From Neoechinorhynchus agilis (taxonomy: Eukaryota > Animalia > Acanthocephala), in the NCBI GenBank assembly GCA_051530055.1, contig CM121342.1:12229480-12293479 (forward strand): DNA of 64,000 bases, in the 5' to 3' direction. The notes under the pieces were generated by a model. That model was not told the origin of the DNA. It saw nothing but the letters and a program-made list of their open reading frames with translations, and made no database searches. The position numbers and the translations under genes are program-made. Below, piece after piece: positions 15,225 through 26,545 of this stretch. Numbering within the stretch: position 1 is the first letter of the stretch; each line of letters begins with the position of its first letter.

Positions 15225-15304
15225 TAAATCTTGGGACTCGGTTGGACGACGAAACTTTAAGGATCTCTGTCGCCCTGGGATTGGGTCTTGCAATATGCAC
15301 GCAA
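15225..15304 (+). mobile_element. Left part of an interrupted CRE-like non-LTR retrotransposon 3' fragment
   Basis: Encodes [25 protein letters not shown], the segment preceding the Cys/His motif and RLE nuclease; compare [24 protein letters not shown] of the copy at 52.9 kb. Confidence 0.75.
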
Positions 15305-17520
15305 TTGGCGAATCCTGCCCCCGGTGCTTTCGTTACTCATTTATATTCGAAATATTTCTCACGCTTGCTCTCTTGCCTCTTCAGTCGATATCTAAAATGG
15401 AGATATGGACACGCGCTTGCCGGTCACCCGGGTGTGTTTCGTAGATCCGCGGGTTTAGCACACTCGAGGTAGGAGTCCTGGCGCACACTCTTGTGCATCG
15501 TCGACTAATTTGCCCGTCATGCTTACGCAACATTGGTAGCACCAGCGTATGGTTAGATTTGTTGCCTTCCATCGTCGAATTTCCTCGGATGTGAATGGCC
15601 TTTTCAGAATCAGTCTTCCTCAGATTCGGTTCCCTGGTTAGAAATGCCGCCTTTTCGAAAACCCCGTGTTGGATTGTTTGCTGGTGGTCTGATATGGCAG
15701 AGGATTTATCGAATGTCCTGCATGCTTGTTTGTGCTGCGAGATCCGCTTTCTGATCCCTTGCATGGTTTGTCCAATGTAGACCTTTGGGCATTCTGCACA
15801 TGGGATTTTGTATATCCCTGATTTTGCCTCTTGACTGGGTTTCCTCTTGAGAATGCCCGCAATGGATGCGCCCCGTTTGTTGTAGATAAAGAGATTTGGA
15901 ACGAGGTAGCGCCTCAGTTTTCCGGTCGCATTGTCACTTATGTGGTTGAAGCCAGCGTATTTGGGGGAGATGTTTGCGGTATCCTTCTTCTTGCGATGCC
16001 CGCTATGTGTTGCCTTTTTCAGGCTGATTTTGATGGCATATTCAGGGAAGCCTCGTGATCTGAGAACTTTTGTGATACTTTGTTTTTCTTCTTCACAATC
16101 CCTGCTTTCTGAAGAAATCATCCTGGCCCTCTTGAAGTAGGACGTTACCGCTGTGATTTTGTAGTGGAATGGTTGGTGGTTCGATCAGTAAGGTGGACCC
16201 CATGGTATAGCTGGCTTGCGGTAGAGCTGTGTTTTAATGTTGCCTTTATCATCGTGTTTTATCCTTACGTCCAAAAAGGAGATAGCACCCTCTTCGTCAT
16301 CCTGAGTCATTGACCACTGGATGTTTGGATCCTGCATGTTGAGTGGAATGCTTAGGTCTCTCATGCTCGTTTCATCATCAGTGACTATGAACACGTCGTC
16401 AATATAGCGATACCACTTTTTGATGTTGGGTTGCTTCTTCATGAAGTTGTTTTCCCATCTTCTCATGTAGAGATCAGCTAGAGTGGGTGCCAGAGGTCAA
16501 CTCCGTCGCGTTGTTCATAGAAAACTTGATCGAATTCAAAAACGGTCTTGCATGTGCACCACTGCAGTAGAGTTGTCCACGTTTTATTATCCAGGCGCGG
16601 TTCTTCGCATTGATTGTGTAGAAGTTCAGCTGCTATGGAAATTGTCTCCTGAAGTGGGATGTTGGTAAATAAGGACGTTACGTCGGCCGTGAAGAATTTG
16701 CACTGTTCATACTTTTCCAGTCGCATTCGAGTTGCAAAGGAAGGACCGTCAGCTATGTAGGACGGAGTGTTCGGCATGACGCTTCTTATTAGTGCATTGA
16801 TTTTTCGGGCCAAACGATGATTGAAGGCATTGTAACTGGCTATTATTGGTCGGTATTGTATCGTTGGTTTGTGTATTTTTGGGGAAAGATACAAGAAGGA
16901 AGCACTGGCTGTGGAAGACCTCGTCTGTTGATAAAAGTGCTCAGTGATCGAGTTATTTTTCCGTAGAGTCCTCAATAATGCATTTAGTTGTGTCTCCCGT
17001 TTTTCTGTTGGATTGGCACTGAGTTTGACGAACTTGCCAGAGTCCAGCAGACTGTGGGCCGCATCTTTATACTCTTCAGTATCTACTGCAACTAGGGCAC
17101 GTCCTGTGTCAGATTTAAGGATTGTAACTGTCTGGTCATTCTTAAGTTGTTTGATTACTGTGCATTCCGGATTACAGATCCCTTGTACCCGTCTCTCAAA
17201 GTGATCATATCATATTCTGCTGCTTCATAAGTTACGTTTGGAGCGGCATGTATGAGTAGTTCGGTGTCACATCTAATCTGTGTTTCACATATTCGCCGTT
17301 TAACAATGTAATCAGGACCTTTGCTCAATAAGGCATCTTCCTCTTCCGTAAAAATTCGTTTGGACTTGTTGAGAAAATATGTATCTGCCTTAGGGATGTT
17401 TGGTCGCAGTCGATCCAACTTCTTGCTATGTCGTTTCTTAATCTCCAGTGTTTGGGCATTTATTCGCTCATTAACGTATCCATTTAGCCACATAATATCG
17501 TCATAGTCAAGAGTGCGTGT
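15305..17520 (-). pseudogene. PLE copy A: inverted, 5'-truncated, frameshifted, the most diverged copy
   Basis: ORF pieces 15381-16121, 16185-16466, 16478-16975 and 17155-17571 match the 826-aa protein with indels and substitutions. Confidence 0.9.
15343..15391 (-). ncRNA. Variant hammerhead motif in copy A with altered stem II
   Basis: Minus strand reads ATATCGA-CTGAAGA-GGCAAGAGAGCAAGCGTGA-GAAA-TATT-TCGAATAT; core and stem I intact, stem II does not fold cleanly. Confidence 0.5.
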
Positions 17521-18175
17521 GCCTGAAAAAGGCAACACATAGCGGGCATCGCAAGAAGAAGGATACCGCAAACATCTCCCCCAAATACGCTGGCTTCAAC
17601 CACATAAGTGACAATGCGACCGGAAAACTGAGGCGCCTGAACCACCTCGTTCCAAATCTCTTTATCTACAACAAACGGGGCGCATCCATTGCGGGCATTC
17701 TCAAGAGGAAACCCAGTCAAGAGGCAAAATCAGGGATATACAAAATCCCATGTGCAGAATGCCCAAAGGTCTATATTGGACAAACCATGCAAGGGATCAG
17801 AAAGCGGATCTCGCAGCACAAACAAGCATGCAGGACATTCGATAAATCCTCTGCCATATCGAACCACCAGCAAACAATCCAGCACAGGGTAGATTTCGAA
17901 AAGGCGGCATTCCTAACCAGGGAACCGAATCTGAGGAGAAGACTGATTCTGGAAGCCATTCACATCCGAGGAAATTCGACGATGGAAGGCAACAAATCTA
18001 ACCATACGCTGGTGCTACCAATGTTGCGTAGCATGACGGGCAAATTAGTCGGCAACAAACCGCAAGAGGTGTGCGCGGATGGAACTCCCCACACTTCGGG
18101 TATTAGCAAACCCGCGGATCTGAGCTACACCCAGACGTGACCGGCTGTGCATGATGTACATATCCTCCATTTTAG

Positions 18176-18222
18176 ATATCGACTGAAGAGGCAAGGAAAA
18201 CCTTGTGAAATATTTCGAATAT
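18176..18222 (+). ncRNA. Minimal type I hammerhead ribozyme (PLE pLTR)
   Basis: Stem I ATATCGA/TCGAATAT (one bulge); core CTGAAGA; extra G; stem II GCAAGG-AAAA-CCTTGT; GAAA; palindromic ATAT helix III; AUU cleavage site predicted at 18214/18215. Confidence 0.8.
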
Positions 18223-18224
18223 AA

Positions 18225-25882: not shown

Positions 25883-25917
25883 CCGGCTGTGCATGATGTC
25901 CATATCCTCCATTTTAG

Positions 25918-25964
25918 ATATCGACTGAAGAGGCAAGGAAAACCTTGTGAAATATTTCGAATAT
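25918..25964 (+). ncRNA. Minimal type I hammerhead ribozyme (3' pLTR)
   Basis: Same motif, exactly 2565 bp downstream of the copy at 23353. Confidence 0.8.
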
Positions 25965-26006
25965 AAATGAGTAACGAAAGCACCGGGGGCAGGATTCGCC
26001 AACGCA

Positions 26007-26545
26007 CATAAATGTCTATGTGGTTATGATGTGGATGAATTTGGAAGACATGGCCTCTTTTGAAAAAAATCAAGAGGGCGTATAGCGAGACACGCGGAGC
26101 TCAACGCAATAATAGGCAGTCCTCAATTCGATACACGTACCGACCATCATGGAGTCCAATCATCTATGTCGCTCGGATGGAAAGGATCCCGGCGGAATGA
26201 CAATTTTTCCATGGAAACAGGGTAAGTGTCTGATTTGGTACGCGACGTTTGTCGACTCGCCGCACCCTCCAATCAACAAGATGCCATGACTGGACCTGGG
26301 GGTGCTGCGACGGCCGCTGAAAAGAAGAAAGCAGCGAAGTATGCTGAATTGTAGCAGCATAACCAGTTCCTTCCTTTTGGCGCGGAAACCCAAGGGGCCT
26401 TGGGATCGGTAGCCCGCAAATTCTGCAAAGAACTTGGCCGTCTCTTAACTGCCACCAAAGGAGATCGCAGGGCACATAGCTTCCTAATTGAGAGGATCAG
26501 CCTCGCGATCCAAAGAGGCAACGCAGCAAGCATTCGAGGAACGAC
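26007..26545 (+). mobile_element. Right part of the interrupted CRE-like element (Cys/His motif + restriction-like endonuclease), decayed
   Basis: [67 protein letters not shown] and RISLAIQRGNAASI; contains stops and frameshifts. Confidence 0.85.

Follow-up and report, generated by a model that had tools for sequence, protein, structure and literature searches.

Two head-to-head Penelope-like element dimers at a single site in a decayed R2-like LINE fragment of Neoechinorhynchus agilis

A 64,000 nt stretch of contig CM121342.1 of Neoechinorhynchus agilis (the window, to which all coordinates refer) contains an array of Penelope-like element (PLE) sequence at 15305-26008, lodged in a fragment of a decayed long interspersed nuclear element (LINE). 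Sequence reading and self-BLAST found this interval to be exclusively PLE, in agreement with a preliminary description of the array, and to consist of four arms of one 2565-bp element arranged as two head-to-head dimers, A-B and C-D. The dimer C-D reads as a canonical PLE insertion with its own target-site duplication. A-B is located inside the left copy of that duplication, adjoining the tail of arm C, and is most likely a second, non-canonical dimer that was inserted after, or during, the completion of C-D. The explanation to which we incline, with moderate confidence, is that target-primed reverse transcription of the Penelope type, acting on both strands, took place in two consecutive rounds at one break in the dead LINE fragment. 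The kind of element is known, and the locus is an instructive rather than a new example of PLE integration.

The arms were mapped by self-comparison of window 15000-26500 with one 2565-bp unit (window 23444-26008). Arm A (15305-17520, minus strand) covers unit 316-2559, its 3' end pointing left, and halts 8 nt short of the short end usual in the family, without a tail. Arm B (17521-20428, plus strand) runs through unit 1820-2565 and then 1-2162, crossing the tandem junction; it is 3'-truncated by 403 nt, within the endonuclease coding region, and its open reading frame (ORF, 18225-20462) reads out into the B/C junction. Six bases found in neither neighbor, ATGTCT (20429-20434), separate it from arm C (20435-22810, minus strand), which comprises unit 158-300 and 355-2565 plus a 35-nt tail (20435-20469), with the 3' end again pointing left. 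The gap in arm C is a 54-bp in-frame deletion; its interpretation as a spliced intron was rejected, splice-site dinucleotides being present on neither strand. Arm D (22810-26008, plus strand) consists of a 634-bp pseudo-long terminal repeat (pseudo-LTR, 22810-23443, unit 1932-2565) followed by one full unit (23444-26008), and ends at the short site (..CGCACA). The outer- and inner-facing arm ends are all 3' ends, except for the cut-short end of arm B. The partial tandem with pseudo-LTRs and the adjoining inverted, 5'-truncated copy that are usual in PLEs are both present, arms B and D crossing the unit junction and arms A and C being the inverted arms joined to them head-to-head.

The inner junctions of the two dimers fall at different unit positions (316/1820 for A/B and 158/1932 for C/D) and neither recurs anywhere else in the 46-Mb assembly, so that A-B and C-D are independent structures formed de novo. 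The uniqueness of both junctions also excludes either dimer being a DNA copy of another locus, by segmental duplication or gene conversion. A simple tandem duplication of one dimer was rejected, given the differing inner junctions and arm ends, as was snap-back synthesis of B from A, because B crosses the tandem junction; in addition, B is 99.7% identical to D, while the pseudo-LTR region of A (unit 1823-2567) is only 91–93% identical to B and D. The preliminary description had recognized two inverted-plus-direct units with these same boundaries at one site of about 15 bp, and in this it was correct, as it was in treating them as separate structures. The two are not equivalent, however: A-B lacks a tail, a duplication and a normal 3' end on arm B.

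The arms differ in how far they have diverged. Private substitutions and small deletions are far more numerous in inverted arms A and C than in the direct ones (96–99% identity of A and C to the unit, against 99.7% of B to D), and small deletions of A and C overlap at unit 1333-1342. At another locus (L044:1497-3196) the minus arm is 95% identical, and its partner (in L042) 99%. The excess of changes may mean that one arm of a dimer is made by a more error-prone step. Arm A shows a further peculiarity in its outer 356 nt (15305-15660), a pseudo-LTR and untranslated region (UTR) segment that includes a hammerhead-like helix (see later). This segment differs block-wise from every other copy, the best match in the assembly being only 86%, while the body of the arm is 98% like B, a pattern that points to a recombinant or to a source subfamily since lost.

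Joining 15304 to 26007 restores the zinc-knuckle region of the decayed non-LTR element in frame, codon for codon, and the rejoined sequence is collinear with intact relatives at both the protein and the nucleotide level, with zero indels; the claim that removal of the array restores the frame is thereby upheld. No nucleotide-level empty site was found in the assembly: the only other copy that retains the left flank (L004) has a deletion of ~52 bp at that place, and two further copies (L002 and L003) start at a point corresponding to window 26017. The 12-mer AAATGTCTATGT is present at the internal B/C junction (20427-20438) and in the right flank (26010-26021), as previously noted, and at no third site in the window. 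Since arm B matches the unit through 20428 and arm C from 20435, the bases ATGTCT are foreign to both, and the probability that six filler bases would equal the expected target hexamer is ~3e-4, given the base composition. The left, trimmed copy of the duplication (20427-20438) shares AA with the end of arm B and ATGT with the end of the C tail. The right copy occupies 26007-26021, beginning with a CAT (26007-26009) that is a conserved His codon of the LINE and shares its CA with the end of arm D. A nesting of C-D within a longer arm B was rejected, as the duplication would then be PLE rather than LINE sequence.

A genome search with the last 300 nt of arm D returned 225 candidate places, 40 of which were scored; the survey of termini is a sample of about 25 loci, and the fetched loci were aligned to a unit dimer in order to place the arm ends. 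These fall into two classes, at unit ~2566-2571 (..CGCACAAT) and, ~35 nt further on, at ~2590-2607, and all nine of the other complete head-to-head dimers pair one short-end arm with one long-end arm. Target-site duplications of 10–14 nt flank seven of the nine, overlapping the short arm end by 1–7 nt and the tail end mostly by 2–6 nt; random 36-mers of the window share at least 10 bases in 0.1% of trials. C-D has D at the short end, C with the 35-nt tail, the 12-mer on both sides and a 4-nt overlap (ATGT) on the tail. Because C-D fits the family pattern of tail plus duplication exactly, the internal 12-mer is its ordinary target-site duplication, of the kind seen at the seven other dimers, and the special capture or template jump onto the target end that had been offered to explain it is needless.

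Overlap of the duplication with both arm ends by a few bases was seen at the junctions L036/L037, L033, L053, L051, L054/L058, L062 and L063, the shared letters being ..AAT on the short side and ..ATGT, AATG or TTAAT on the tail side. Such overlaps suggest either primer-template pairing or a cut preference that fits the two start sites, and fit poorly with the statement, from in vitro work, that homology to the cut DNA is absent at initiation. A remnant of LINE reverse transcriptase (RT) sequence (L044:1317-1484, 41% aa identity) ends 13 bp from the short end of another dimer, which is among the two that lack a duplication.

Dimer A-B departs from the family pattern. Neither of its arms has a tail and no repeat flanks the pair; arm A ends at unit 2559 with zero overlap with the flank, and arm B at unit 2162 on a 2-nt overlap (AA). 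The left duplicate is without CAT, and perhaps also without AA, a loss of 3–5 target bases. Two usual marks of PLEs are accordingly confined to C-D, where C extends 35 nt past the end of D and a 12-nt duplication is retained. The lack of a duplication, the small target deletion and the non-canonical 3' ends of A-B are features of insertion into an existing break, and we infer that the irregular round which produced it resembled retrotransposition of that type.

Several observations bear on which dimer came first. CAT, a codon whose His is nearly invariant in the knuckle of the LINE superfamily, is retained in the right flank and missing from the left copy. If CAT is counted, the original duplication becomes CATAAATGTCTATGT and overlaps the end of D by 2 nt; an overlap with the short arm end is present in all seven other duplications, whereas the C-D duplication as retained is alone in having none. 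Private substitutions per base are also about twice as frequent in D as in B, although this is weak evidence. For these reasons C-D is taken to have been inserted before A-B.

In the first round, which the anatomy of C-D shows, the PLE endonuclease cut the two strands about 12–15 nt apart, and each 3' end primed cDNA on read-through PLE RNA at one of two fixed start sites. The product was the head-to-head dimer C-D, with D begun at the short site and C 35 nt beyond it (the tail), flanked by a duplication of (CAT)AAATGTCTATGT. In the second round the left duplicate would have been rebroken between ACGCAA and CAT, which is the position of the bottom-strand nick of the first round and lies 11–15 bp from the C tail, or else the break was simply never sealed. 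Both ends would then have been reused irregularly, A beginning 8 nt short of the normal site without microhomology, and B at an internal RNA site (unit 2162) on the AA overlap, with CAT (perhaps with AA) lost and no duplication made, as is typical of insertion into a pre-existing double-strand break. Neither round would require a preference for the LINE as such. The sequence appears to fit equally a second round that followed at once, by a template switch at the unsealed nick, and one that came later.

The tail is required for recognition by the Penelope endonuclease of D. virilis, and the PLE complex may nick the element's own sequence, according to the summary in PMC11167929 of earlier work (Pyatkov 2004). 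Because the tail is reported in that summary to be needed for recognition, the co-location of A-B with the C tail would be explained if the PLE ribonucleoprotein re-targets its own insertion junction, that is, the regenerated half-site together with the adjoining 35-nt tail. We regard this as possible but doubtful. If true, the tail-bearing end would act as a local homing signal, PLE compound arrays and clusters would be accounted for, and re-targeting would be the in vivo counterpart of the tail requirement for endonuclease recognition in vitro.

A number of points weigh against the two-round interpretation. It concerns a single locus, and among the ~25 sampled loci no second arm was seen to abut the tail end of another. 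The order of events comes from parsimony and not from an allele with a single dimer, and arm A is the most divergent of the four, yet is taken to belong to the younger event; its divergence lies in UTR blocks and looks like that of a different source, but no source matching these blocks was found in the assembly. The tail-recognition result is second-hand, reaching us through PMC11167929 and its citation of Pyatkov 2004, and a near-identical inverted and tandem array is known from the assembly alone.

Among the alternatives, a single compound event comes close to the template jump entertained in the preliminary description. In it, the strand filling in the left duplicate would have reached the unsealed ACGCAA/CAT nick while C-D was being completed, the RT would have changed template at that point, moving to an internal site in a different PLE RNA to give B, and the cut in the opposite strand would have primed A. 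The junctions of A with the left flank and of D with the right flank do correspond to the same phosphodiester of the empty site (within 2 nt), as would be expected if the nick of the first round was itself reused; B is joined to the remnant at an internal, non-canonical RNA position with 2 nt of overlap, much as in a template switch, and the PLE protein is a predicted dimer that extends both strands (PMC11167929). Such an event would nevertheless need four cDNAs and at least two RNA sources, the UTR of A being 86% identical to the others and B, C and D 99% alike, and no other four-arm product was present in the sampled loci; re-cleavage shortly afterwards would give an indistinguishable sequence. 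We consider it rather unlikely, and the reverse order of insertion less probable again. In the latter, A-B would have entered a naive LINE site with a 3–5-bp deletion, followed by a canonical C-D at the boundary of B and target, with a duplication of exactly 12 nt and with the right-hand CAT derived from the D end (..CACAAT minus one A). Both copies of the 12-mer would then be complete and of typical length, and the usual family end, ..ACAAT, is indeed one deletion from ..ACAT. Against this, an aberrant D end must have recreated by chance, and at the right length, the conserved His codon of the LINE; C-D would remain the sole dimer with a duplication that does not overlap the short arm end; and the co-location of the dimers would go unexplained, as the truncated end of B carries no tail.

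It is very improbable that the internal 12-mer arose by chance or slippage (ATGTC copied from the end of C), or that the array is an assembly artefact. The filler ATGTCT does repeat 5 nt of the adjoining ATGTCA, but slippage covers only five of the six filler bases and not the full 12-nt identity to the flank, and it ignores the duplications that the family makes; for chance, the probability of the hexamer alone has been given above. PLE tandem and inverted structures are known to trouble assemblies (PMC8557442), and this array structure, too, comes from an assembly. Nonetheless, private substitutions and indels set the arms apart, and the end of A is unique in the assembly, so that the arms are not collapsed or duplicated copies of each other. 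Little can be said either for site-specific or homology-guided targeting of the LINE knuckle motif by the PLE family, which we judge most unlikely. Two dimers do share one site, and LINE remnants lie less than 1.5 kb from four other PLE loci; moreover, the proposed resemblance between target and element is real, with ACGCAACAT of the target matching ACGCACAAT of the PLE short end at 7/9 positions in register. That comparison was made post hoc, however, and is not repeated at other loci, where in-register similarity of target and element past the duplication is 0–4/9 (seven loci), the level expected by chance; guidance by homology goes no further than a few bases at the priming sites. The flanks of the other sampled family insertions are AT-rich and unrelated both to each other and to the array site; the LINE remnants near them correspond to residues 16-71, 140-266 and 611-669, as against about 488 at the array; and the LINE copies read across the knuckle motif (L012, L018, L021, L022 and L026, of ~40 sampled matches) are uninterrupted there. 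Targeting of a motif of another retroelement, as judged from these sequences, is not supported.

The host element is a ~640-bp, 5'-truncated 3' fragment. Its left part (15225-15304, plus strand) encodes the linker as far as the knuckle region's first Cys and is 96% identical to L004, and its right part (26007-26570, plus strand) encodes the zinc knuckle and a restriction-like endonuclease (RLE) region with three in-frame stops. The evidence on its type was obtained from intact relatives rather than from the decayed copy in the window. An RVT_1 domain is present in one intact relative (L012), and the RT of another (L026) weakly matches R2 proteins. The conserved C-terminal domain has >10,000 representative relatives world-wide; the full-length relatives combine PHD, RFX, C2H2 or OTU N-termini with RVT_1, and no apurinic/apyrimidinic (AP) endonuclease (Exo_endo_phos) was found in them. 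By sequence, the C-terminus had no matches in Pfam or the PDB, and a protein atlas search returned unnamed clusters only. An AlphaFold model of the C-terminal 206 aa of an intact relative, built on a 26-sequence alignment, had a pLDDT of 92, and in a Foldseek search its top seven PDB matches were all R2 proteins (E 1e-6 to 1e-4), with NucS and restriction enzymes (PD-(D/E)XK nucleases) next in rank. On the strength of this predicted fold, the host is an R2-like, RLE-type LINE. The preliminary description had named it CRE. Founding members of CRE insert into a specific repeated target, the spliced-leader genes; here, the >40 matches to the LINE are spread over all three large contigs in differing contexts. 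All RLE LINE clades, of which CRE is one within the R2 group, have a Cys/His knuckle just ahead of the endonuclease domain (PMC5678591), and the Cys/His spacing of this shared region does not establish the name.

Two of the LINE copies, L002 (G000:C1:15968368-15968923, minus strand) and L003 (15939474-15940029, plus strand), are 90–91% identical to the fragment and lie inverted, ~29 kb apart. Their flanks on the upstream side are the same, and the starting point that they share, corresponding to 26017, is only 10 bp away from where the PLE was inserted. The pair looks like a segmental inverted duplication, and the closeness of its truncation to the PLE site may be a coincidence.

Coding capacity is retained in arm D, which has an intact ORF of 826 aa (23402-25882) that starts inside the pseudo-LTR. 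RVT_1 was detected at residues 334-508 (Pfam, E 4.6e-12), and a match to GIY-YIG in the expected C-terminal position, residues 691-728 (E 2e-4), scored 22.0 bits, just under the Pfam cut-off of 22.6. A minimal hammerhead-like motif, CTGAAGAG (25918-25964, plus strand), with a hairpin and GAAA, was found by eye in every pseudo-LTR copy, 10 nt upstream of the ORF start codon; an Rfam search for a hammerhead gave no match even at E 10. Elsewhere in the window, 47430-48553 and 62482-63523 are remnants of distant, other PLE families (33–37% aa identity to the arm D ORF). The array sits in a 13-kb, repeat-filled interval between the 3' end of MLH1, the C-terminal exons of which are at 12418-14149 (plus strand), and a RabGAP-TBC gene with an exon at 27777-28139 (minus strand).

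How PLEs integrate is still under study, and an in vitro system has existed only since 2024. The locus offers a well-resolved natural product with an empty site that can be inferred to the base, in which a canonical both-strand-primed dimer stands beside an irregular one at the same break, and it hints at reuse of the tail-bearing end or of the original nick. That an insertion site may be reused under the direction of the tail or of the nick is a modest lead. The ten dimers surveyed (nine besides C-D) further show that, in the family, each arm end shares a few bases with the duplication.

Among known systems, the host resembles the R2-group RLE LINEs in having a relative with RVT_1, an R2-like knuckle and endonuclease fold and no AP endonuclease, and world-wide relatives with DNA-binding domains at the N terminus, and differs from them in that its copies are dispersed on three large contigs and not in one target gene. 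The canonical unit of endonuclease-bearing (EN+) PLEs has a partial tandem with a pseudo-LTR, an inverted 5'-truncated copy, a tail of 30–40 bp at one end and a short duplication (PMC8557442, PMC3846280); work in vitro has shown cutting and extension of both DNA strands by the PLE protein and has traced the tail to a pair of adjacent internal sites where reverse transcription begins (PMC11167929). C-D corresponds closely, with its 634-bp pseudo-LTR, head-to-head inverted arm, 35-nt tail on one arm, duplication of 12 nt (originally up to 15 nt), ORF start in the pseudo-LTR, and an RT followed, at the C terminus, by the GIY-YIG match just under threshold. The array differs in the second dimer, which lies in the left duplicate without tail or duplication and in which one arm is 3'-truncated and was initiated internally. 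A close parallel is Pen2_Av of Adineta vaga, which was found inside a non-LTR retrotransposon with no duplication and a microhomology junction (PMC3846280). Both cases involve a PLE in a LINE within the rotifer-acanthocephalan lineage, an empty site inferred from a related LINE copy, outer boundaries without a duplication and microhomology at junctions, but in the present array the missing outer duplication would be the outcome of two events stacked at one place, and one of the two did produce a duplication.

The inverted arms also recall LINE-1. In LINE-1 twin priming both target strands prime cDNA, giving inverted arms, and endonuclease-independent LINE-1 insertions at double-strand breaks have no duplication, a small target deletion and abnormal 3' ends. 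A-B shares these last three features, and its own use of a pre-existing break is inferred. The PLE enzyme differs in combining a GIY-YIG endonuclease with a telomerase-like RT, and priming from both strands is the rule in PLEs, not the exception.

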